Sequence record: PQ015378.1
Direction: 5' to 3' (one strand)
Length of the DNA: 64,000 nucleotides
Part shown: one piece after another, positions 25,193-62,766 of the stretch
Layout of the letters: every line of letters starts with the position of its first letter
How positions within the stretch are numbered: position 1 is the first letter of the stretch
Translations under genes and position numbers: made by a program
Notes under the pieces: model-generated
Told to the model about the DNA's origin: nothing
The model's database searches: none
The model's input: only the letters and a program-made list of their open reading frames with translations

Positions 25193-25555
25193 ATGTATCA
25201 GATTTATTCCGTCAGCCCTGGAAACGTACGACTCAATAATGTCTCCCATGGCGATAAGTTGGAAGTCTGTACGGCTGTGGAGGAACAATTCCATAGCTCG
25301 GTGAACGTGGTTGTTTGGTTCACCGACAAGCCACGACCAGAGAAAGGACCGGACGACCTCTATGGATTCTATTGTGTCGATTCCAAACTGATGTCATTCA
25401 CGTTCAAGCACCTACATCACATCCACCGCAAATACGATCCACAAGACCTGATTCCGATTTACCCCTTCCTGATTGCGGTTAAGGATGGGGAGGACGTAGC
25501 TATATTCGAAGGAACCCGCACTAAAATGCTGTACCATTCCCGAGGCGATGAATGA
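25193..25555 (+). CDS. Hypothetical protein
   Basis: ATG after GAGG. Confidence 0.75.
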   Translation: MYQIYSVSPGNVRLNNVSHGDKLEVCTAVEEQFHSSVNVVVWFTDKPRPEKGPDDLYGFYCVDSKLMSFTFKHLHHIHRKYDPQDLIPIYPFLIAVKDGEDVAIFEGTRTKMLYHSRGDE

Positions 25556-25830
25556 TCCCCGAATTCCTGGCACACATCTGGCGTGCAATTAACAGGTACA
25601 AAACGTTCCAGGCGGTTAACTCAGGTGGTTGTGAGGAATTCGCCAAGACCTTCCTGGATTTCATTCCAGGTGGTGAGATCGTTGGTACCGACAACATGGA
25701 TGGCTGGGATTCGAAATATCCCGGACATATCTGGATCTATGATGGTAAGCTACACTACGATAGCGAATGCCTGAATGGTACCGCGGACTGGCGTGACTTA
25801 CCAATCTTCAAACGAGCGGAGGCCAAATGA
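25552..25830 (+). CDS. Small protein with a putative Cys-His-Asp triad (papain/transglutaminase-like)
   Basis: NSGGCEEFA, GHIWIY and HYDSE; ATGA overlaps at both ends. Confidence 0.55.
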   Translation: MIPEFLAHIWRAINRYKTFQAVNSGGCEEFAKTFLDFIPGGEIVGTDNMDGWDSKYPGHIWIYDGKLHYDSECLNGTADWRDLPIFKRAEAK

Positions 25831-26282
25831 AGACTGTAGCTTTCGTCCCCAAGATCATCATGGAGCAATTCGACAAACCCCAAGTCGTTATCTCCATTGG
25901 CGATCCTGATGAGGACATGCCCAACTTCAAGTGCGACATGATCGATGTGTTGCGCATTGCGGTGAATGACATCCCTGACGGTATCGCTATCGAAGACCTC
26001 GACGGAACCTATCGTCAGTTCGATTGGCATGATGCACGCAAGATTCTGCAGTTCGAACATCGGTGGAAAGATGAACACATCGTCGTCCACTGTCACGCGG
26101 GTATCTCTCGATCAGCAGCAGTCGCCAAGTACCTTGGCGACGTATGTGGACGTTTGCTGATCCTTCAGCGTCCTGACCAAGCTGACTTCTACAATCGGCA
26201 GATCTATCGTCAGCTTCAAATCACTCACCTGGATATGCGTATGACAGGTGGTCAAGTTTACCCCATCAAGGTAGGTAACTGA
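25827..26282 (+). CDS. Tyrosine/dual-specificity phosphatase
   Basis: VVHCHAGISRSAAVA matches the HCxxGxxR P-loop; VISI and D-acid loop upstream. Confidence 0.9.
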   Translation: MKTVAFVPKIIMEQFDKPQVVISIGDPDEDMPNFKCDMIDVLRIAVNDIPDGIAIEDLDGTYRQFDWHDARKILQFEHRWKDEHIVVHCHAGISRSAAVAKYLGDVCGRLLILQRPDQADFYNRQIYRQLQITHLDMRMTGGQVYPIKVGN

Positions 26283-36082: not shown

Positions 36083-36448
36083 ATGGAAATCACTCCAAAC
36101 TTCATATACCACCAGAACGACGAAGTCATCTGGAAAACAGAATGCGATGCTTACATGAACTCGGACGTGACCGTCCATAAAGAGTACGAAGGTCGTGTTA
36201 CCCAGGTGAAGAACGATCTGGTTGTGGTTGCAATCAAGAACGATCGGGGCATCGATGTGCTCGTCTCGGCCTGGTTCGGTACTAGCCGTACTCAGGAAAC
36301 GATCCGCTTCAAAGACAAGAACATCGGGTATCTCCGTGAATCCATGCACATCCACAACTTGCTCGACCAAGAGCAAGAGCGTCACGAAAAAGAAGTTGAA
36401 CGTCTCCTGAAAGAACTCCGTGAGGTAGCAAAGTGCAAAAGCGCATGA
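36083..36448 (+). CDS. Hypothetical protein
   Basis: RBS GAGG; coiled-coil C-terminus. Confidence 0.8.
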   Translation: MEITPNFIYHQNDEVIWKTECDAYMNSDVTVHKEYEGRVTQVKNDLVVVAIKNDRGIDVLVSAWFGTSRTQETIRFKDKNIGYLRESMHIHNLLDQEQERHEKEVERLLKELREVAKCKSA

Positions 36449-36813
36449 AACGTTTCCGTCGTCACCACGAACTGTCCTTCTGGGTTGGCAATAGTGACCA
36501 AGGTGGTTGGGATCAGTTCCGCAGCCTACTGATCATCGCATCGTCTCCAGAGCATGCGGTGCATGTATTCTGGAAGGGTATGTTGAATTACGATGAGTCG
36601 TGCCTCTATACGCTGACTAAAGAGCAAATTCTTAGTCATCTGGAAGATGCTTATCGTAATGGGGCACCAATTCCAAAGATGTGGGAGAAGTATCTCCCCG
36701 AGGTTGAAGATACCTGCGGTGAAGACATCGCTAACTGGACCTGGGAAAACGTAGGTAAACCAGCCCCTCGCTTCGGTGCAAGCATCGCCATGACGGATTT
36801 CCACAATGGATAA
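36433..36813 (+). CDS. Hypothetical protein
   Basis: GTG after GAGG. Confidence 0.7.
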   Translation: MQKRMKRFRRHHELSFWVGNSDQGGWDQFRSLLIIASSPEHAVHVFWKGMLNYDESCLYTLTKEQILSHLEDAYRNGAPIPKMWEKYLPEVEDTCGEDIANWTWENVGKPAPRFGASIAMTDFHNG

Positions 36814-36904
36814 AAGTACTTCGCTCGATCATGTAATGTTGGAAGAGCGCGCCAAGATGTTCTCTTCTCTCGCAATCAATCACTCCCTAAAGGAAACCGG
36901 TACC

Positions 36905-37558
36905 ATGCAAGCCACTCAAGAAATCATCGCAGCATCCCAAGAGAAAGAACTGAACCGTGAAGAGCTGGCCGCTCTGGAGCAGTTCCGTGAACAAACCGGT
37001 ATCGACGCTACCGCCGAGGGGGTGCAAGCTCCGCAGAAAGCTCTGACCAAGAAACAACTGAAGGCCGCCAAGTACGCACAGAAGAACATGATGCGTCAGC
37101 TGCAACAGTTCCAGCGTCAAGGCCAAGCCAGCCACATCATGAACAGGCTGTTCCAGCACTCCATCCGCACTCCGGAACAAGCTCGCCACATCCAGGCTCA
37201 CGACCTCGCCAAACTGGAACTGCGTAAGATCCTGGGCGATCGCCAAGCCGAAGCCTTCTTCGGTGCCAAGGCGGATACCAAAACCCACGACTTCTTCCCG
37301 AAGGCCACCATCGAAGCCAACCCGAAACTGATGACATCGGTTACCGGTGAAGCTCGTACCCTGTCCCAGGTCTTCGAGTACTTCATCTACAAGCACTTCA
37401 TGATCCTGACCGAGAAGGCAGGTGCCGAAGTCACCGAACCTCTGAACACTTCCATCGACTGGGCCACCGAAGGCACCATCCCGGAGTACAAGGCGTATGA
37501 AGAAGCACCGGTCGAAGCCGCAGAAGCAGAAGAAACCGCGGAAGCTCCGATCGCGTGA
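36905..37558 (+). CDS. Hypothetical protein (helical, acidic tail)
   Basis: ATG after AAGGA; highly biased codons. Confidence 0.8.
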   Translation: MQATQEIIAASQEKELNREELAALEQFREQTGIDATAEGVQAPQKALTKKQLKAAKYAQKNMMRQLQQFQRQGQASHIMNRLFQHSIRTPEQARHIQAHDLAKLELRKILGDRQAEAFFGAKADTKTHDFFPKATIEANPKLMTSVTGEARTLSQVFEYFIYKHFMILTEKAGAEVTEPLNTSIDWATEGTIPEYKAYEEAPVEAAEAEETAEAPIA

Positions 37559-37742
37559 AAAGCAAGACCACTCGCTGAAACCAGGTTCCGGCCTGGTGTG
37601 CGCTGACGCTGTCTGGAGTGGAATCAAACGGGCACAACCTAACCATCGTGAAAGAACCTTCTCCGAGATGTGGGAACGCTCCAAGCGCATGGACTTCTGG
37701 TCGCCCGAGTTCACCCCAGCAGAAGTCATGGGTATCGCATAA

Positions 37743-47883: not shown

Positions 47884-48390
47884 ATGCAACATACCGACCA
47901 ACTGGATGTAGCCCCAACCGAACAAGCAGCAACCCCTCAGTCCGCAGACCAGCTGCGTATCCGTAATCTGGAAACCCGCGTGAAGTTCCTGGAAGATTCG
48001 TTCCAAGAGCTGGTTCGCCTGGTGCAGAAATCGGAAGCCACCGTCGCCAAGAAAATGCTCGGCGCAATGTCCGGTGCGTTCCATCAGATCTCCGACCAAC
48101 TGGCACTGACTGCCCGTGGTCCCCACCCAATGCAGTACTTCGCTAAGCGCGTACCGGAAGGTACCGAGCAATCGGTCGTCGTAACTCGCAAGGGTGAACA
48201 ATACGACTTCGCTACCTCTGTCGATCCAACCAAGATCGAAAACGACGGCACCGAAGAACTGGCCATCATGTTCAAGATGCGTGAACTACTCCAGGATGGT
48301 GAAACCGCATGGTTCCACATTACCCTGGGTGAAGCGAAAGGGGGTACTGGCGATGGAGCAGCAGACGTTCCAGCAACCCCAGCGTCCTGA
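47884..48390 (+). CDS. Hypothetical protein
   Basis: 168 aa, RBS GGAG, N-terminal coiled coil. Confidence 0.75.
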   Translation: MQHTDQLDVAPTEQAATPQSADQLRIRNLETRVKFLEDSFQELVRLVQKSEATVAKKMLGAMSGAFHQISDQLALTARGPHPMQYFAKRVPEGTEQSVVVTRKGEQYDFATSVDPTKIENDGTEELAIMFKMRELLQDGETAWFHITLGEAKGGTGDGAADVPATPAS

Positions 48391-48999
48391 ACGTAAACGC
48401 AGTATCACGATGGAAATGGCTCTGAATGAAGAGCCAAAGAAATTCGCGACTGCAATCCACAGTGGCATCGAAGCTCGGTTACCTCGTGTAACCGAATCGG
48501 TGTTCAAAGCACGGGTGATTCCTATCCTCGAAAAGATCATGGTCCCGGCACATCGTGCGGCATACCAGAAGATCGTCGTGGATCTGATGTTTCCTCTGTA
48601 CGTGATCGATGACAACGATAAGGACAAGATCCTTCACATCGTTCCACCAATTGCTCGTACTCCATTAACTACCGTCCCTCAGGTGGATGGTGGGTTGTCC
48701 GTGGCTGACGTCATGTACAACATGGACCGTTACCGGGAACTGAATCGTCTGGATATCATCGACGATACGATGCGGGGTTATCTTGATCGGATCACGATCA
48801 TGCCGAATCTGGTCGACGATATTCTTTTACCGATTCACCGTATCCTACAGGCATACGGGCGTGAGCTGGATGTTACAGCGGATGCTCAGAATCCTTTAGG
48901 TCGTGATGCTCTTCCTCAGTCAGCTGATAAACGGGGGAGGGCCAAGCTACCCTGTCCTTCCAATCCAGCAGCTTTACTGAAGAAGAAGATGAAGACTGA
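48353..48999 (+). CDS. gp64-like protein; reads through in frame into SbcD, or ends at TGA 48997-48999 after a -1 shift at the G5 run
   Basis: The -1 frame from 48933-48937 gives GEGQATLSFQSSSFTEEEDED*, overlapping the SbcD ATG. Confidence 0.65.
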
Positions 49000-50137
49000 T
49001 CGCACAAAACAACCAGGGGTATTTCGATACCTAAGTGTCGGTGACGTCCATTTGGGTCACCGCACTACACCTGCGGAGTTGATTATCCGTAACCTCGATC
49101 TGACGATCACGGACGAACTGTTGAGAGAAGCGGACATGCTGATCATTACAGGCGACCTATTCGATCGTCAGCTGAATAACGGCGACATCGTGGTTCACCA
49201 GATCAACCGGTGGATCACTCGTCTGATGTTCCGTTGTTCAGCCTTCAACACGATGATTCGTGTGGTCGAAGGAACTCCATCCCATGACCGTGAGCAATCT
49301 CGCTTCTTTGTCGAACAGAAAGAGAATGCGATGATCGACGTGGATCTTCATTATACGAAGAACCTGAGTATCGAGTACATCGAGAAACTGGACTCGTATT
49401 TCCTATATGTCCCCGACAAGCATAACCCGTCAACAGATGTAACGTTGAGTGAGGTGAAGAAACTGATGGGTGAGTTGAACATCGAGCAGGTAGACTTTGC
49501 AATCATGCACGGCGCTTTCTCGTATCAGCTACCAGCCATCGTACCTGAACCGACACATGACGAGAACGAGTACCTCAAGCTGGTGAAACATCAGATCTTG
49601 ATCGGACACGTTCATCTGATGACCGTAAACGAGCGCATTCTGGCTGCCGGTAGTTTTGATCGGATCTGTCATAATGACGAAGGGGCAAAAGGGTTGTTCC
49701 AAGTCACCGTAAAAGAGAACGGGGACTGGGAGCGAAAGTTCATTGAAAACAAATGGGCGAAGAAATACGTCACGCTTGACTGTCACGGTATGGACACGAT
49801 GCAACTCGTTGTGGCCGTACGTCAGCTAGCACAAGAACTGGTCAGAGGTTCTTCCATTCGGCTTCGTTGCAATCCGCATGATGTAGCCAACGGTGATATC
49901 GATGTGTTCCGTAAGGAGTACACCGCTTTTGACTGGCAGATCACAATCGACAAAGTGGAATCGAAGAAGAACACAGTGGCTGAAACGTTCAAGGCATTCG
50001 ACATGTCACAGTTCAAAGCAATCACTGCTGATTCGATTCTCGACCTGGTAGCTCCAATGCTGGACAAGTTAACCGATGACCAAGCCGCAATCAATCGTGC
50101 ACTCGGTCGACTGAACCTGCTAGTGGCGAGGAAATAA
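48989..50137 (+). CDS. sbcD: SbcD/Mre11-type metallophosphoesterase nuclease (phiKZ gp65-like)
   Basis: GDVHLG, TGDLFD, GTPSHD, IMHG, GHVH and GSFDR motifs. Confidence 0.9.
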   Translation: MKTDRTKQPGVFRYLSVGDVHLGHRTTPAELIIRNLDLTITDELLREADMLIITGDLFDRQLNNGDIVVHQINRWITRLMFRCSAFNTMIRVVEGTPSHDREQSRFFVEQKENAMIDVDLHYTKNLSIEYIEKLDSYFLYVPDKHNPSTDVTLSEVKKLMGELNIEQVDFAIMHGAFSYQLPAIVPEPTHDENEYLKLVKHQILIGHVHLMTVNERILAAGSFDRICHNDEGAKGLFQVTVKENGDWERKFIENKWAKKYVTLDCHGMDTMQLVVAVRQLAQELVRGSSIRLRCNPHDVANGDIDVFRKEYTAFDWQITIDKVESKKNTVAETFKAFDMSQFKAITADSILDLVAPMLDKLTDDQAAINRALGRLNLLVARK

Positions 50138-50977
50138 ATGGATATCATCGAAAGAGACGTCGGGCAGATCCCAGTTAGCATTGGGACCTCGCTGGCTTTC
50201 GAAGGTCTGATGGGTATCCACCCCAACCAACCAAAGCAACCGACCAACAACAAAACGATACAGAGTGTGTGGATTAACCTCCGCACACTCGCACGGAACT
50301 TATTCAGTGCCGTGCCTACGGACAAAGCGGATGATCTCGATTATTCCGCTTCTGTTCAAGTCCTGATGACCGAGGTGCAAGTCTTACCTGCGGCACTCCA
50401 ACAGCTGGGGTTCACTGGTAAGATTCGTTTCTATCTCGCCTCTAAGGACGCGGTCAAGTGGATGCTACCCAAGGCGAAGTGGAAAGAGACCAAAGGTCCT
50501 AAAGCGATTGCCATGGAGATGTTCGAACGCTTTGTCGCTATCGAGCTGTATCAACAGATGAAGACCTCGAATATGGATGTATTCGAGATTGATGTCAAAC
50601 CCAAAGCTGGTGAAGGCATTGTCGCCCTGTTGACACACTACCCACATGAACTGCTGTGGAAACCTCAGTTTGCCCGTCTGCTCCTGCTGGAGTCACACAC
50701 TGGGAAGATCAAGACATACAACACCTGGTACACCAAGCTGAATTCGCTGAAGGATAAGGACAACGATTATCCGATGCCTTTGACCGAGTTCACTCTCCAA
50801 GTGTTTGGTGACGGCTTGCTAATCGCACCACAAGAACCCATCAAGTTGAGGAAAGAGCTGAAACAGCTATCCCTCGACAAGAAATGGACGGGCATCACCA
50901 GCCCCGACAAACTCTATCACGACGTAATGACTTCGTCGAAAGAGTTGCAAGACCTGTATAAGAAGCTCAGGAAATAA
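50138..50977 (+). CDS. Conserved chimallivirus protein (phiKZ gp66-like)
   Basis: WINLRTLARN, LLLLESHTG and QVFGD; synteny. Confidence 0.75.
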   Translation: MDIIERDVGQIPVSIGTSLAFEGLMGIHPNQPKQPTNNKTIQSVWINLRTLARNLFSAVPTDKADDLDYSASVQVLMTEVQVLPAALQQLGFTGKIRFYLASKDAVKWMLPKAKWKETKGPKAIAMEMFERFVAIELYQQMKTSNMDVFEIDVKPKAGEGIVALLTHYPHELLWKPQFARLLLLESHTGKIKTYNTWYTKLNSLKDKDNDYPMPLTEFTLQVFGDGLLIAPQEPIKLRKELKQLSLDKKWTGITSPDKLYHDVMTSSKELQDLYKKLRK

Positions 50978-51062: not shown

Positions 51063-51827
51063 ATGTCGCAAGCACCACAAGTAACCCTCAACGCCTTTTC
51101 CGTTATGTCCACCTGGCTGTACGCTCAGCCGGTGCAGGGTTCCAGCAAGCGCCCTTCCATCCGTTTCAACGTTCGTGGTAACGTACCAACCGTCGTCGTG
51201 AAGACTGGCGTTGATGGTGACGAGAACCACGGCAAGATCGACTTCCGTACCGACCTGGCCACTTTCGCAGCCGCGATCCACTACGCCAAGCAACTGGCGA
51301 ACAACGTGCCAGACGTTCCACAAAAGCGTGTCTTCATCTACCAAGACGACTTCGTCGCTGGTAAGAAACTGGACAAGCAGATGGTTCTGTCGAAATGGGA
51401 AATCGGTCGCGCTCAAGATGGCCGTATCTACATGGCAGTCCTGAGCACCAAAGCCAGTCGCCCACGCATCCCGTTCTACTTCGGTCCGTCGAAGTATCAT
51501 TCCATCCAGAACGGTGATGGCTCCGAGATCACTCCGAAGGAAATGTCCGAAGCCTACGCTATCGGGTTCCTGGCTCCAGCAGAAGCAATCGTTTACAACC
51601 TGATGGTCGCGCAGTTCGACGAGAACGCGAAGAACGTCGCTAACCCAGCCAACTTCGGTGGCGGTAATGGCGGTGGTGGCGGCTACAACAAAGGTGGTAA
51701 TGGCGGCGGCGGGTACAACCGCGGCGGCAATGGTGGTGGCGGCAATAACTACGGCGGGGGTGGTAACTCCGGTGGTGGTAATGGCGGCTTCTCCGACGAT
51801 GGTTTCGGCGACGCCATGGCCTTCTAA
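51063..51827 (+). CDS. chmC: Phage-nucleus nucleic-acid-binding protein ChmC-like
   Basis: Immediately upstream of the sigma-like nvRNAP subunit; about 190-aa globular part plus a G/N-rich disordered tail ending in an acidic-aromatic tip. Confidence 0.75.
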   Translation: MSQAPQVTLNAFSVMSTWLYAQPVQGSSKRPSIRFNVRGNVPTVVVKTGVDGDENHGKIDFRTDLATFAAAIHYAKQLANNVPDVPQKRVFIYQDDFVAGKKLDKQMVLSKWEIGRAQDGRIYMAVLSTKASRPRIPFYFGPSKYHSIQNGDGSEITPKEMSEAYAIGFLAPAEAIVYNLMVAQFDENAKNVANPANFGGGNGGGGGYNKGGNGGGGYNRGGNGGGGNNYGGGGNSGGGNGGFSDDGFGDAMAF

Positions 51828-51835
51828 AGCAAACG

Positions 51836-51861
51836 GGCTACCTTCGGGTAGCCTTATGCCC
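51836..51861 (+). terminator. UUCG terminator
   Basis: ggctacc-TTCG-ggtagcc-ttatgcc. Confidence 0.8.
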
Positions 51862-51876
51862 CAAAGCGCCGACTGC

Positions 51877-51899
51877 AAAAAATCTCAGATCTATATTAC
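51877..51899 (+). promoter_or_regulatory. Early promoter AAAAAATCTCAGATCTATATTAC
   Basis: Full extended motif. Confidence 0.85.
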
Positions 51900-51929
51900 T
51901 ACTTTGCTGTAGTAGAAAAGGTAACGTCT

Positions 51930-53504
51930 ATGCAACTCACCGTTACTGGCATCCAAGGTTCAGGCTTCACTGAAGTCACCGTGGAGCACCAGGGCAAGAA
52001 ACTGGCATTCACCACAAAGATCTATTGCAAGGTCAAACTTGCGGATCAACAACGTGTGTTCAAGGAATTCAACGCGTATCTCGAATTCCTCGGAGACGAA
52101 CCTCAACAGAAGATCTGGGAGTGCTACGAACGCATTCACGGTATCCTCAACATGTCGCTCGACACCATGCGAGTGGCAATGTCACTGCGTCACTACATCC
52201 GCGAGATGTATACCCACATGCCGATGAATGGCATGCGTCGTTGGTTGACGACTCAGGGTAACTTGTTCATCCCGATCGAGATCGAACGGAAGATAACCGC
52301 GGAGTCCCGCTACAACAAGAAAGAACAAACGTACCTCGAACACGAGTACATCAACCTGGCTACGGTATCGCTGGCGATTCGCCCGATGATTCCGATCTTC
52401 GGTGAGTACCTCGAATCCAGCTCCGAGTTCGATTCGAACAAAGAGACGGAAGTTCTGGGTCTACTGCATGACTGTGAAGTTGCAAACTGGCCTGTAAACG
52501 AAACCGGTCCTCATGGTGAGGAAGTTGACACGGCGTTCGATAAGCTGGCTGGCTACGTGCAGTTCTGTGTGGAAGATGAACCAACCACACTGGCCCGTCT
52601 GTGGAAAGGTATGTCGACGGTGGAAGTTCCAGTACACCTACGCTCGAAGGTTCTGGTTCGTCGTCTGACCATCGTTCCTCTGGACGACATCACTTCGTTC
52701 AGTATCGTGGCGAACACCTATCGCTACGTTCGTTCGATCATCAGCCCGGCAGAGCGCACCACTGCTGAGCGTGTCAACGAGAAGAAACCAGAGTCTGGTG
52801 GTGACGAGGACGATAAAACTTCGTTCCTGGAAGCCAACAAAACCCGACACTCGGTTCCTCCAGGTGACATCGAGGCATTCAACCTGGATACCTTCGATCA
52901 TGTCAAGCTGGCTCAAAAGGTCGATCCTACAATCGATCTGGCGAAACTGCAAGCATGCGTACAGGCAATCCCGAACGTTTCGAACTTCTCAATCAACCCG
53001 CACCAAGTGAAGATCGCTCAATGGGTTATGGCCAAAGCGTTCCCAGCTCGTGCTTTTTACCACATCAACAAAATAGCAGCACACAACATGCTCGCTACGT
53101 CGCAGGCGATCCTGTGGCACTGGGGCTTCCTGGACATCGCGGTGTTCCAGCAAGTCGAACTGTTGAAACAAGGTGAATCGGGTTCTCAGTTCCAACTGGG
53201 TTCTACCCGTACGAACTCTCGGATCCCAAACCGTTACAAAGACGATTTGGCCGAACTGTTCCCTCACCAAAAAGCACCGCAGTATTCGAACGCAGGCGTA
53301 GCTGCGCGTATCGATAACATGGCAGCCTTGGCCATCAATACTGCGACCGCATCCATCCACGCCTCCAACTGGGGCTACCGTGGGCCGGAGCAACTCTACA
53401 CGGAATCCAAACAGCCTGACCGCGGTCACGTGCTCGTGATTCCGCAGACCATCAAGGCAACATTAACTGAGCTCGTCCTGCACTTGGGCCGTCTCAACAA
53501 GTAA
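51930..53504 (+). CDS. nvRNAP sigma-like subunit (phiKZ gp68-like)
   Basis: 524 aa, between chmC and picA; RPMIPIFGEY and SNFSINPHQ. Confidence 0.8.
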   Translation: MQLTVTGIQGSGFTEVTVEHQGKKLAFTTKIYCKVKLADQQRVFKEFNAYLEFLGDEPQQKIWECYERIHGILNMSLDTMRVAMSLRHYIREMYTHMPMNGMRRWLTTQGNLFIPIEIERKITAESRYNKKEQTYLEHEYINLATVSLAIRPMIPIFGEYLESSSEFDSNKETEVLGLLHDCEVANWPVNETGPHGEEVDTAFDKLAGYVQFCVEDEPTTLARLWKGMSTVEVPVHLRSKVLVRRLTIVPLDDITSFSIVANTYRYVRSIISPAERTTAERVNEKKPESGGDEDDKTSFLEANKTRHSVPPGDIEAFNLDTFDHVKLAQKVDPTIDLAKLQACVQAIPNVSNFSINPHQVKIAQWVMAKAFPARAFYHINKIAAHNMLATSQAILWHWGFLDIAVFQQVELLKQGESGSQFQLGSTRTNSRIPNRYKDDLAELFPHQKAPQYSNAGVAARIDNMAALAINTATASIHASNWGYRGPEQLYTESKQPDRGHVLVIPQTIKATLTELVLHLGRLNK

Positions 53505-61239: not shown

Positions 61240-62766
61240 ATGGAACCAGCACTGACAGTCGAAAGGTATACCCACGGTGTACGCTTGTCCGGCTACACGA
61301 AGGATACGCTGTACAAAATGCAGCGCTTCCTCGATACGTTACTGCTACGGGAACCGACTAAGGTCCAAGGCCGAATGGTCATGGTCACGAAGAAGAAGTA
61401 CTACGGCATGACGGAGGATGGGACTTCCATCTTCATCCACCGGAACTCGTACCCCCAGTTGGTATCCCACTTGGCCAATGTGGGGATCACAGATGAAAAG
61501 ATCAATGTGATCGACATTCCGGTTCCCAAGGCTGAACCCGCCACGTTTGTGGTGCAATCCAAGTTCACTGCACACGAGTATCAGGAGAAGATCAAAGAAG
61601 ACATTCTGAGACCTCACCTGCACTCCGCACGGGTGGACTTGCAAACAGGTAAGGGAAAGACCTTCAGTTCGTTGTACACGGTCTCTACGATCGCTCAGCG
61701 GCTTGTGGTCATGGTTCCTCCCAAGTACTTCGGTATCTGGCAGGAGGCATTGGAAGACGTCTACGAAAACATGCAGATGCGTTGGATGACCGTATCGGGA
61801 TCTGGAGAACTCCAGGCTCTAATCGACCGAGGGATCAATGATGATCTCAAGGGCATCGACGTGATCATTATCTCCAACGTAACCTATCGTTCGTATATAG
61901 ATGCATTCGAGCGATTGGGGGATAAGATCCACACCGTTGGTTACAATGCCCCGCCACCTCGTTTCCATGAAGCGATCAAAGCGGGCGTCCAGATCAACGA
62001 TGAGATCCAGGAAGACCCTGGTCTGCTGTTCCGTACCGACATTTACACCAACATCGCAAAACAGATCTACCTGTCTGCTACGCCGTACACTGGTAACTCC
62101 TACGTTACCAAGATGATCGATTTGATGCTTCCACCAGAAACGGCTTGTCGTCTGCCTGAATGGGATATGTATATCAACGCGGTCGGTGTTCTGTATAGCG
62201 AGCCTGACATCCGATCCAAAGATTATCTGACGCCGTTCAAGAACACGTATAACCATGCGCGTTACGAAACGCAGATGATGAAATCGAAGAAACGACTGCA
62301 GCTGTACAACACAATGGTGGCACGTATTATCCAGAAGCAATTCCTGGAAGATAAGCAGCCTGAGCAGAAATGCTTGGTACTGTGTGCGACTGTTGAATTC
62401 ATCAAGCAGTTGGTGAAGTTCCTCAAAGAGAAGTACCCGGATCAAGATATCTGGGAACACGTCTCTGGCTCGCCCTTCGAACGTCTGCAAACGAATGACA
62501 TCACCATCTCTACGATCAAGTCGTCGGGTACCGGTGTTGACATTAAGAACTTGCGTGAGGTGATCCTGTGTCAAGCAACTGACTCGAAGAAGGATAACAT
62601 CCAGATTCTGGGTCGACTGCGGAAACTCAAGCTCTACCCTGAAGTTACCCCACGGCTGACCTTCTTGGTTTGCCAGAACATTCCGCAGCATTGCAACTAC
62701 GCTCGGAATAAACGGGAACACTTCATGGGGAAAGCTCTCAACATGGCAATGCGGCGCTACGGTTAA
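61240..62766 (+). CDS. SF2 helicase (phiKZ gp75-like)
   Basis: LQTGKGKT, DEIQ, LSATP, GTGVDI and QILGRLR. Confidence 0.92.
   Translation: MEPALTVERYTHGVRLSGYTKDTLYKMQRFLDTLLLREPTKVQGRMVMVTKKKYYGMTEDGTSIFIHRNSYPQLVSHLANVGITDEKINVIDIPVPKAEPATFVVQSKFTAHEYQEKIKEDILRPHLHSARVDLQTGKGKTFSSLYTVSTIAQRLVVMVPPKYFGIWQEALEDVYENMQMRWMTVSGSGELQALIDRGINDDLKGIDVIIISNVTYRSYIDAFERLGDKIHTVGYNAPPPRFHEAIKAGVQINDEIQEDPGLLFRTDIYTNIAKQIYLSATPYTGNSYVTKMIDLMLPPETACRLPEWDMYINAVGVLYSEPDIRSKDYLTPFKNTYNHARYETQMMKSKKRLQLYNTMVARIIQKQFLEDKQPEQKCLVLCATVEFIKQLVKFLKEKYPDQDIWEHVSGSPFERLQTNDITISTIKSSGTGVDIKNLREVILCQATDSKKDNIQILGRLRKLKLYPEVTPRLTFLVCQNIPQHCNYARNKREHFMGKALNMAMRRYG

Follow-up and report, generated by a model that had tools for sequence, protein, structure and literature searches.

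Pseudomonas phage RVTF4, a jumbo phage, has on record a single gene in which a gp64-like domain runs directly into a nuclease of the SbcD/Mre11 type, and this raises the question of whether the two were joined by evolution or by something more trivial. We addressed the question in a 64,000-nucleotide stretch of sequence record PQ015378.1 (hereafter, the window), in which positions 48353–50137 are identical to positions 110353–112137 of that record. The open reading frame (48194/48353–50137, plus strand) has no stop throughout; the original prediction that the frame continues uninterrupted from the gp64-like part into SbcD is thus borne out, and from 48353 it amounts to one open frame of 594 codons for amino acids. 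The submitters annotated it as one CDS, XDJ14701.1, labelled ‘SbcD-like subunit of palindrome specific endonuclease’. As argued below, the one long gene at this locus most likely goes back to a sequencing error or to a mutation that arose very recently, rather than to the evolution of a fusion protein. The features on which the argument draws, all on the plus strand and numbered as in the window, are as follows:

48353–50137, plus strand: the single 594-aa open reading frame as it stands, equal to CDS XDJ14701.1 of PQ015378.1.
48353–48999, plus strand: gp64-like gene (phiKZ gp064 / PhiPA3 gp058 / 201phi2-1 gp120 family, phrog_5171), from its first base to the TGA that closes the gene in the geometry of the relatives.
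48437–48880, plus strand: conserved gp64-like core (residues 29–176 of the reading frame, the extent of the phrog_5171 match), from the profile match and an AF2 model.
48989–50137, plus strand: Mre11/SbcD-type nuclease gene of the phiKZ gp065 family (phrog_100); it is intact, encodes 382 aa and starts at an ATG of its own, from the phrog_100 match and the AF2 fold.
47884–48390, plus strand: next gene upstream (phrog_16420); it occupies the place of PhiPA3 gp057, which a note in the PhiPA3 record likens to phiKZ gp063.
50138–50977, plus strand: next gene downstream (phrog_3229); it occupies the place of PhiPA3 gp060, likened in the PhiPA3 record to phiKZ gp066.
51063–51827, plus strand: homologue of PhiPA3 gp61 (64% identity), a phage-nucleus-associated RNA-binding protein.

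The two halves of the long frame belong to different protein families. In profile searches, residues 29–176 are matched by phrog_5171 (E 5.7e-23) and residues 209–575 by the SbcD-like phrog_100 (E 2e-57). Structure models were built with AF2 for each half separately rather than for all 594 residues, and a joint alignment of the whole frame was set aside, having misplaced gp64-like sequences onto the SbcD part (9–18% identity, versus 21–58% in the gp64-like alignment).

The core profile of the gp64-like half places it in phrog_5171, with 43 representatives at E <= 1e-3, and the PhiPA3 gp058 protein, which the PhiPA3 record likens to phiKZ gp064, finds the window by tblastn at E 6.6e-11. (The ‘gp64’ of the papers on the PhiPA3 shell protein is another gene; the numbering differs.) The AF2 model of the core is a compact alpha/beta domain. 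Sequence searches returned no relative of the family in Pfam or among PDB sequences, a fold search of the domain against the PDB likewise gave none (best E 0.22, TM below 0.2), and a fold search of BFVD recovered uncharacterised jumbo-phage proteins only. A literature search yielded nothing usable on phiKZ gp064 or gp065 and no paper on RVTF4. A typical member of the family would stand alone as a protein of ~170–220 aa with an acidic tail and a stop codon that overlaps the SbcD start; the frame as deposited does not have this form, because it continues into SbcD through a basic linker.

The AF2 model of the nuclease half has a pLDDT of 91.1. The top 50 Foldseek matches of the model are all Mre11/SbcD (best 3tho_B, E 1.9e-15), with 320–400 aligned columns and target-normalised TM-scores up to 0.73, and the model combines a calcineurin-like phosphoesterase fold with a capping domain of the Mre11 type. 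Across 64 SbcD homologues, the window protein included, D19, H21, G55-D56, H99-D100, H174 and G206-H207/H209 are invariant; these Asp and His residues fall at phosphoesterase motif positions and are candidate metal ligands, with the motif III region departing from the canonical form. At the sequence level the signals are mixed: phrog_100 matches at E 2e-57, Pfam PF00149 (Metallophos) scores 16.9 bits, below its cut-off of 21.5, and the PDB profile search reaches Thermotoga maritima Mre11 at E 0.0044. An ‘SbcC-like subunit’ is present as an annotated CDS at 241748–244201 of PQ015378.1, with Psa21 gp224 as its counterpart.

The upstream neighbour overlaps the start of the gp64-like gene by 38 nt, as it does in the relative L006, and the downstream neighbour begins immediately after the SbcD stop; the gp61 homologue beyond it places the locus in a conserved gene block with chimallin and the subunits of the non-virion RNA polymerase.

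In all relatives examined, the gp64-like and SbcD proteins are encoded by two genes. This holds for nine phage genomes (Psa21, D6, Noxifer, PhiPA3, PS119XW, Viktualia, Phabio and PA7 among them), for seven metagenome contigs (five with an SbcD 86–90% identical and the distant L030 and L031), for the best 120 SbcD homologues, none of which exceeds 399 aa, and for the 43 gp64-like representatives found among 1.84 billion proteins, the longest of which has no more than 219 aa. The SbcD ATG and the gp64-like TGA share an 11-nt overlap in 12 of 13 relatives checked and in contig L031. Noxifer has both genes in the same frame, with a stop codon and a further three bases between them. Among the relatives examined, no other genome or contig has a gp64-like/SbcD fusion. 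A search of metagenome_contigs and viral_contigs with an exact 30-mer from just downstream of the junction returned no near-identical relative, and a single-protein query of viral_contigs found no related loci. The original prediction took the ancestral state to be two genes and called for a comparison with orthologues for a separate gp64 ending in an acidic tail; every comparison agrees with that ancestry, and the tail is separate from SbcD and acidic in every relative.

What sets RVTF4 apart is a single base. The two-gene span measures 1785 nt in the window and 1786 nt in L006, its closest relative, and alignment with all five close relatives leaves one uncompensated one-base gap. Over 48353–48999, the gp64-like gene thus carries one frameshift, being one base shorter in the record than in relatives, with zero stops and zero insertions. 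The change of frame falls within the equivalent of a single codon, inside a short G run; at the corresponding place the relatives lack such a run and therefore cannot show what its proper length is. The other frame has an open stretch of 22 codons, closed by a TGA that lies 11 nt beyond the ATG of SbcD. Its last 20 residues include seven acidic and no basic ones, whereas the same bases read in the long frame give no acidic and seven basic residues. The Psa21 and D6 orthologues, over their last ~20 residues, match the window in this other frame only (E 1.5e-4 and 1e-3, for a search space of 2.2 kb), and 17 of 19 residues are identical to those of the closest relatives. The acidic tail of the other frame goes beyond chance.

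The pattern of substitution in the tail gives an indication of timing. Between the window and its nearest relatives, 11 of 57 bases differ, yet these differences change only two of the 19 residues in the relatives’ frame, as against six in the frame of the window; had six or more of the tail substitutions been unconstrained, such an outcome would have P <= 0.018. The tail is 89% identical, the body 82%. Because so many base differences have altered so few residues in the relatives’ frame, the shift must be either very recent or not real. Codon usage points the same way, the 17 codons before the SbcD ATG scoring -6.9 bits in the long frame and +6.5 bits in the other (references: 11.5 +/- 5.7 bits for real in-frame stretches and -14.4 +/- 7.6 bits for off-frame ones). 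That the shifted reading remains open up to SbcD is unremarkable, since 42–45% of off-frame 19-codon stretches in RVTF4 genes contain no stop. These results agree with what had been proposed for the junction, namely a one-base change of frame in a short G run, an acidic C-terminus overlapping the SbcD ATG in the other frame, and phage-like codons in the shifted tail beside a linker that looks off-frame.

The reliability of the remainder of the record bears on how the missing base is to be read. Within the window, the gp64-like/SbcD junction is the only break despite 56 homopolymer runs of five or more bases, so the assembly is not riddled with homopolymer errors. Genome-wide comparison with Psa21 nevertheless brought out a second one-base break that is common to no relative, in the dCTP deaminase gene, which aligns unbroken in all of the 13 other rows listed and of which 273 of 304 records have the greater part in one place. 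This break does not adjoin a homopolymer of four or more and is, in that respect, less typical of homopolymer miscalls. The stop-to-stop scan of reading frames behind this census produces numerous false flags, from antisense shadow ORFs and from off-frame similarity where genes adjoin, and of its 18 flags two were judged specific to RVTF4 and real in the record, namely those at the gp64-like/SbcD junction and in the dCTP deaminase. This count is a minimum, the scan being blind to breaks that remove fewer than ~20 residues or that lie in poorly conserved genes.

The remaining frame differences seen are natural polymorphisms common to other genomes. A flag in the window at a phosphatase reflects a natural state and not an RVTF4-specific break: the pair at 25552–26282 is one gene in Psa21 (gp029) and in several independent metagenome contigs. 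Likewise, a tail gene (RVTF4 215789–216808) is one open reading frame in RVTF4 and PS119XW and two genes in Psa21 and D6. Another flag in the window, at the gp040 homologue, was spurious.

On balance, we lean towards the missing base being an error of the consensus sequence, made in base calling or assembly, with the fused GenBank CDS a consequence for annotation and not an evolved protein. It is the second unshared one-base break, in the dCTP deaminase gene, that tips the balance towards consensus error over recent mutation; that one record should have two single-base deficits in conserved genes, neither of them decayed, is in keeping with a consensus error biased towards deletion. A genuine one-base deletion, very recent and confined to the RVTF4 stock that was sequenced or to its direct ancestor, is a serious contender that we nevertheless rate as possible rather than probable. 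Such a deletion would yield a real gp64-like–SbcD fusion of ~67 kDa and, with the same reserve, would leave no free gp64-like protein with an acidic tail and cost the phage its coupling-driven SbcD except for starts at the internal ATG. The deposited sequence itself and the single CDS annotated by the submitters speak for a genuine deletion, as do the otherwise unbroken frames across the homopolymer runs of the window, the natural fusion and fission of neighbouring genes in the clade and the same-frame arrangement of Noxifer, by which the junction is not rigidly fixed. Against it, the fusion is a singleton with no near-identical relative in the collections and inverts the charge of a universally acidic tail; undiminished purifying selection on that tail in the other frame leaves the event almost no evolutionary lifetime, and the dCTP deaminase break would call for two recent lesions in conserved genes. 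It should also be said that genuine one-base deletions, too, are favoured in short runs, and that both lesions are probably tolerable to the phage, dCTP deaminase being accessory and SbcD retaining its own ATG. That the deficit is real and that the phage propagates normally with a tethered gp64-like–SbcD protein seems to us improbable.

The original prediction had offered three options, of which the error and the real recent deletion stand as just graded, while the third, a slippage or phase-variable switch, finds no support. Programmed -1 slippage, or a G run of variable phase, would have both an acidic-tailed gp64-like protein and the gp64-like–SbcD fusion made, and we consider it very improbable. 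One glycine tRNA could conceivably re-pair one base back on the G run, and the next codon of the long frame, AGG, is very rare in the phage (1.1 per 1000 codons) and might cause a pause. The site, however, has no in-frame tandem-slip heptamer of the form X XXY YYZ, leaving single-codon re-pairing on the G run only; the 100 nt downstream fold at -16.6 kcal/mol (z +0.97), with 168 of 200 shuffles folding at least as well; and relatives, which encode the gp64-like protein wholly in a single frame, lack a G run at the corresponding codon, so nothing is conserved. Neither slippery heptamer, nor stimulatory RNA structure, nor conservation in relatives is therefore found, and the window contains ten G runs that are as long and two that are longer. 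The tracts known from phase-variable genes or from transcriptional slippage are far longer. Scarcely credible at all is a fusion evolved and selected in the RVTF4 lineage, with the gp64-like domain as an N-terminal module of the nuclease, in favour of which there is the open frame itself and nothing else. Its linker reads off-frame by codon usage and results from shifting the frame of a tail whose other-frame sequence, old stop and 11-nt overlap are all still conserved. No other lineage examined has the fusion, and the substitution pattern of the tail excludes one that is old and selected.

On the preferred reading of a consensus error, the locus would comprise two genes, like its counterparts in the other chimallin-encoding jumbo phages, one for a gp64-like protein of ~215 aa (the compact alpha/beta domain followed by a disordered acidic tail) and one for the 382-aa Mre11/SbcD nuclease, and ribosomes finishing the first may restart on the second, a translational coupling suggested by the conserved 11-nt geometry. 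The deposited sequence, one base short inside the G run near the 3' end of the gp64-like gene, would lead the reading into the SbcD frame, putting a basic, off-frame linker of ~19 residues in place of the acidic tail and giving rise to the 594-aa frame.

For curation, XDJ14701.1 very probably corresponds to two proteins, and the dCTP deaminase gene of PQ015378.1 contains another suspect break; surveys of protein families or domain architectures that include this record would take in a spurious ‘gp64-SbcD fusion’. The finding itself is ordinary, its one point of modest interest being the conserved gene pair. In chimallin-encoding jumbo phages, a protein of orphan fold with an acidic tail lies directly upstream of Mre11/SbcD, usually with the 11-nt ATG...TGA overlap, even at 25% identity. 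The conservation of this overlapping pair suggests a functional tie between gp64-like and SbcD proteins that is independent of any fusion, and offers a sensible starting point in the search for an accessory factor of the nuclease within the conserved gene block. Should the tethered protein prove real, it would be a natural experiment indicating that the fast-evolving gp64-like protein works in the same complex as the Mre11/SbcD nuclease of nucleus-forming jumbo phages, e.g. as an accessory or regulatory subunit with a dispensable acidic tail.

Several known systems invite comparison. With the phiKZ gp064 / PhiPA3 gp058 / 201phi2-1 gp120 family and the adjacent phiKZ gp065, the window shares the HMM match, the place directly upstream of SbcD, the 11-nt overlap, the acidic tail and a size of ~190–220 aa, but in the window the body is read in one frame and the tail and stop in another. 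The nuclease resembles Thermotoga maritima Mre11 and the SbcD proteins of Escherichia coli and Staphylococcus aureus in predicted fold and has invariant Asp and His residues at the phosphoesterase motif positions, although its sequence is very divergent and the annotated SbcC-like gene of RVTF4 lies ~130 kb away instead of adjoining it. Programmed -1 frameshifting of the lambda G/GT tail chaperone or dnaX type likewise involves two overlapping frames and products sharing an N-terminal part, but RVTF4 lacks the heptamer, the structure and the conservation, and its relatives simply have two genes. The natural fusions and fissions of the clade (the Psa21 gp029 phosphatase and the tail gene) also concern adjacent same-strand genes found as one open reading frame or two; there, however, both states occur in several independent genomes, whereas the gp64-like/SbcD fusion occurs in RVTF4 alone. 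The locus also compares with the one-base indel artefacts or lesions that merge or split coding sequences in deposited phage genomes, with which it shares a one-base length difference from all relatives, downstream sequence fully conserved in its original frame, a singleton record and, in the dCTP deaminase, a second break. RVTF4 differs from such cases in that the shifted frame stays open into the next gene, and annotation pipelines do not flag it because the outcome is a long, plausible fusion and not a truncated gene.

The window is 100% identical to positions 62001–126000 of the record of Pseudomonas phage RVTF4 (PQ015378.1; 302.5 kb, source pond water) and contains genes for a nuclear shell protein, a multisubunit RNA polymerase, and a tubulin-like GTPase as well as large structural genes, a gene set characteristic of nucleus-forming (chimallin-encoding) jumbo phages. 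The nearest sequenced phages are Psa21 and D6, with ~70% protein identity across the locus considered here:

48353–50137, plus strand: ORF of 594 aa, starting at an ATG within a single open frame (48194–50137 in the ORF listing of the window) and annotated as one SbcD-named CDS (PQ015378.1 110353–112137)
ORF residues 29–176: gp64-like part, matching PHROG profile phrog_5171 (function not assigned; E 5.7e-23)
ORF residues 209–575: SbcD part, matching PHROG profile phrog_100 ‘SbcD-like’ (E 2e-57) and cleanly split from the preceding part
48989, plus strand: ATG of SbcD

In the frame used by the relatives, 22 codons are open and are closed by a TGA 11 nt beyond the SbcD ATG, the final 20 residues including seven acidic and no basic ones; the same bases in the frame that runs on into SbcD encode no acidic and seven basic residues. 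The original prediction, which described a fused ORF with an acidic tail in another frame, is therefore accurate, and its label ‘gp64’ is right, since phiKZ gp064 and gp065 are the homologues that the PhiPA3 record gives for these families.

The locus belongs to the same conserved gene block as the chimallin and non-virion RNA polymerase genes, and the second gene downstream of it is the homologue of PhiPA3 gp61 (a nucleus-associated RNA-binding protein; 64% identity). Between that homologue and the gene that follows it in the block, Psa21 carries an ‘endonuclease’ (gp070, 52539–53120) and the window a 102-nt spacer (51828–51929), as if a free-standing homing-type endonuclease were present in the one and absent from the other. 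Another local difference lies 3′ of the DNA polymerase gene (window 36083–37742), with a nucleotidyltransferase (gp049) in Psa21 versus two short hypothetical genes in RVTF4.

In Psa21, D6, PhiPA3, Viktualia, and Phabio, the gp64-like and SbcD genes are annotated apart and overlap by 11 nt. The annotated SbcD starts of PS119XW and PA7 are further downstream, past the conserved ATG, and seem wrong; the ATG of the full 379–381-codon frame precedes the gp64-like stop by exactly 11 nt. (The annotated start of Psa21 gp066, ~20 codons after the onset of homology with the window and D6, seems wrong as well.) In Noxifer, both genes share one frame, with a stop codon and three extra bases between them. 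Five metagenome contigs, each from a different sample (L006–L010; SbcD 86–90% identical to that of the window), likewise show separate genes overlapping by 11 nt, and two contigs with a very distant gp64-like protein (25% identity) have SbcD directly downstream, overlapping. In these distant relatives (L030:2501–4202 and L031:123–1779), the genes are still overlapping neighbours at a gp64-like identity of 25% and SbcD identities of 44–64%. None of the best 120 SbcD homologues from a collection of 5.8 billion proteins exceeds 399 aa, and none of 43 gp64-like representatives from 1.84 billion proteins exceeds 219 aa. All relatives checked have a separate gp64-like protein with an acidic tail (three to eight acidic and at most two basic among the last 20 residues). 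Taken together, the separate genes, protein lengths, and tails show the overlapping two-gene arrangement to be ancestral and general, with RVTF4 as the sole exception.

The stretch that begins with the gp64-like start and ends with the SbcD stop is 1785 nt long in the window and 1786 nt in L006. In nucleotide alignments with all five close relatives, the window shows a single one-base gap that is not compensated and falls at a short G run, and the residues shared with L006–L009 in either frame narrow the switch to the equivalent of one codon; the relatives have no G run at this place. Apart from this frameshift, the gp64-like gene has no in-frame stops and no insertions. SbcD is intact, with 376 of 379 residues aligning to Psa21 at 78% identity and all family-invariant residues kept. 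The original observation and its core inference, namely, two ancestral genes and a one-base change of frame, thus hold.

Over the last 19 codons of the gp64-like gene, 11 of 57 bases differ between the window and L006–L009, causing two residue changes in the relatives’ frame versus six in the window’s own. Simulated sets of 11 random substitutions alter a mean of 7.7 residues, and if as few as six of the 11 are taken as unconstrained in the relatives’ frame, two or fewer residue changes arise with P = 0.018. Identity is 89% in the gp64-like tail and 82% in the body. Codon usage before the SbcD ATG likewise favours the relatives’ frame (+6.5 bits) over that of the long ORF (−6.9 bits), on a scale that gives 11.5 ± 5.7 for real in-frame and −14.4 ± 7.6 for off-frame stretches. 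The tail has been selected in the old frame for essentially all of the history of the RVTF4 lineage, and the frameshift either arose extremely recently or does not exist in the phage. The lack of stops in the shifted reading is unremarkable, since 42–45% of off-frame 19-codon stretches likewise stay open.

The whole RVTF4 and Psa21 records were compared piecewise as deposited, with antisense and gene-border artefacts removed by hand. Two RVTF4-specific breaks were left, the gp64-like/SbcD junction and the dCTP deaminase gene. The latter (PQ015378.1 287895–288520; L021:29895–30520) is annotated as two CDSs, ‘dUTPase’ and ‘dCTP deaminase family protein’, and spans 626 nt in RVTF4 versus 627 nt in Psa21, the Psa21 protein matching in two frames, i.e. 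with one frameshift. All other rows listed match the protein in one piece, and most of it is found in one place in 273 of 304 phage records. Inside the window, two other two-frame matches were flagged, one spurious and one natural. The natural one is a 92-aa ORF (25552–25830) overlapping by 4 nt a 151-aa tyrosine phosphatase (25827–26282), jointly corresponding to the 239-aa Psa21 gp029; it was rejected as an RVTF4 break because the split state is common and Psa21 is the fused variant. The phosphatase has 151 aa in close relatives and ~240–250 aa in a few independent contigs, and the pair is a natural fusion/fission polymorphism rather than an error. A third difference, in a tail gene, was also rejected as natural, being common to other phages: this 339-aa ORF annotated as amidase (PQ015378.1 215789–216808; L020:5789–6808) is represented by two genes, each in its own frame, in Psa21 (gp199 and gp200) and D6 and is undivided in PS119XW, PA1C, and BRkr.

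The presence of two one-base deficits, both undecayed, in conserved genes of a single record is slightly better explained by a deletion-biased consensus error than by two independent fresh mutations, and we regard a consensus sequence error as the probable source of the missing base. A genuine recent mutation in RVTF4 is a serious but less probable reading: the dCTP deaminase break has no adjoining homopolymer of four or more, the 56 runs of at least five bases in the 64-kb window contain no other break, and the phage would probably tolerate both lesions. All further readings are jointly very improbable. Programmed slippage or a phase switch at the G run, very improbable in our view, draws circumstantial support from a glycine tRNA that could re-pair on the run and from the next codon, AGG, being very rare here (1.1 per 1000). 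Against it, direct reading of the sequence finds no in-frame tandem-slip heptamer, the next 100 nt downstream are no more stably folded than shuffles (z +0.97), the relatives, needing no frameshift, conserve nothing of the site, and the window has ten G runs of this length and two longer ones. An evolved gp64-like–SbcD fusion is almost certainly not at hand. A literature search found no paper on RVTF4. The finding is an ordinary one: a single database record, and no other, shows a frame change of one base, which most likely stems from an error in the consensus and, failing that, from a fresh lesion. What chiefly follows is that one CDS is mis-annotated and that the quality of PQ015378.1 calls for caution.

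By predicted fold, the C-terminal part is a true Mre11/SbcD-type nuclease: its AF2 model (pLDDT 91.1) has only Mre11 or SbcD among its best 50 PDB matches (top E 1.9e-15), and invariant Asp and His occupy the places of the phosphoesterase motifs. Its sequence is highly divergent, with a Pfam score under the cut-off and an E of 0.0044 in a PDB profile search. An SbcC-like gene is annotated ~130 kb away (PQ015378.1 241748–244201), similarly distant in Psa21 (gp224), and the two subunits do not appear to form an operon in these phages. The gp64-like part is predicted with confidence (pLDDT 86.6) to form a compact alpha/beta domain, only its ends being of low confidence. It has no relatives in Pfam, PDB sequences, or PDB folds; its structural neighbours are uncharacterised jumbo-phage proteins (of Pseudomonas, Erwinia, Ralstonia, Klebsiella, Vibrio, and Aeromonas phages). 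Compared with SbcD, it diverges far more quickly (25% versus 64% identity in one and the same contig).

The 11-nt ATG...TGA overlap may couple SbcD translation to that of the gp64-like gene, and such coupling would hold the two proteins at a fixed ratio. Neither this coupling and ratio nor an accessory role depends on the fusion. Because of the overlap and the tail, the gp64-like protein may reasonably be considered a candidate accessory factor of the phage Mre11/SbcD–SbcC nuclease: its acidic, probably disordered tail resembles those by which DNA-metabolism proteins contact DNA-binding partners.
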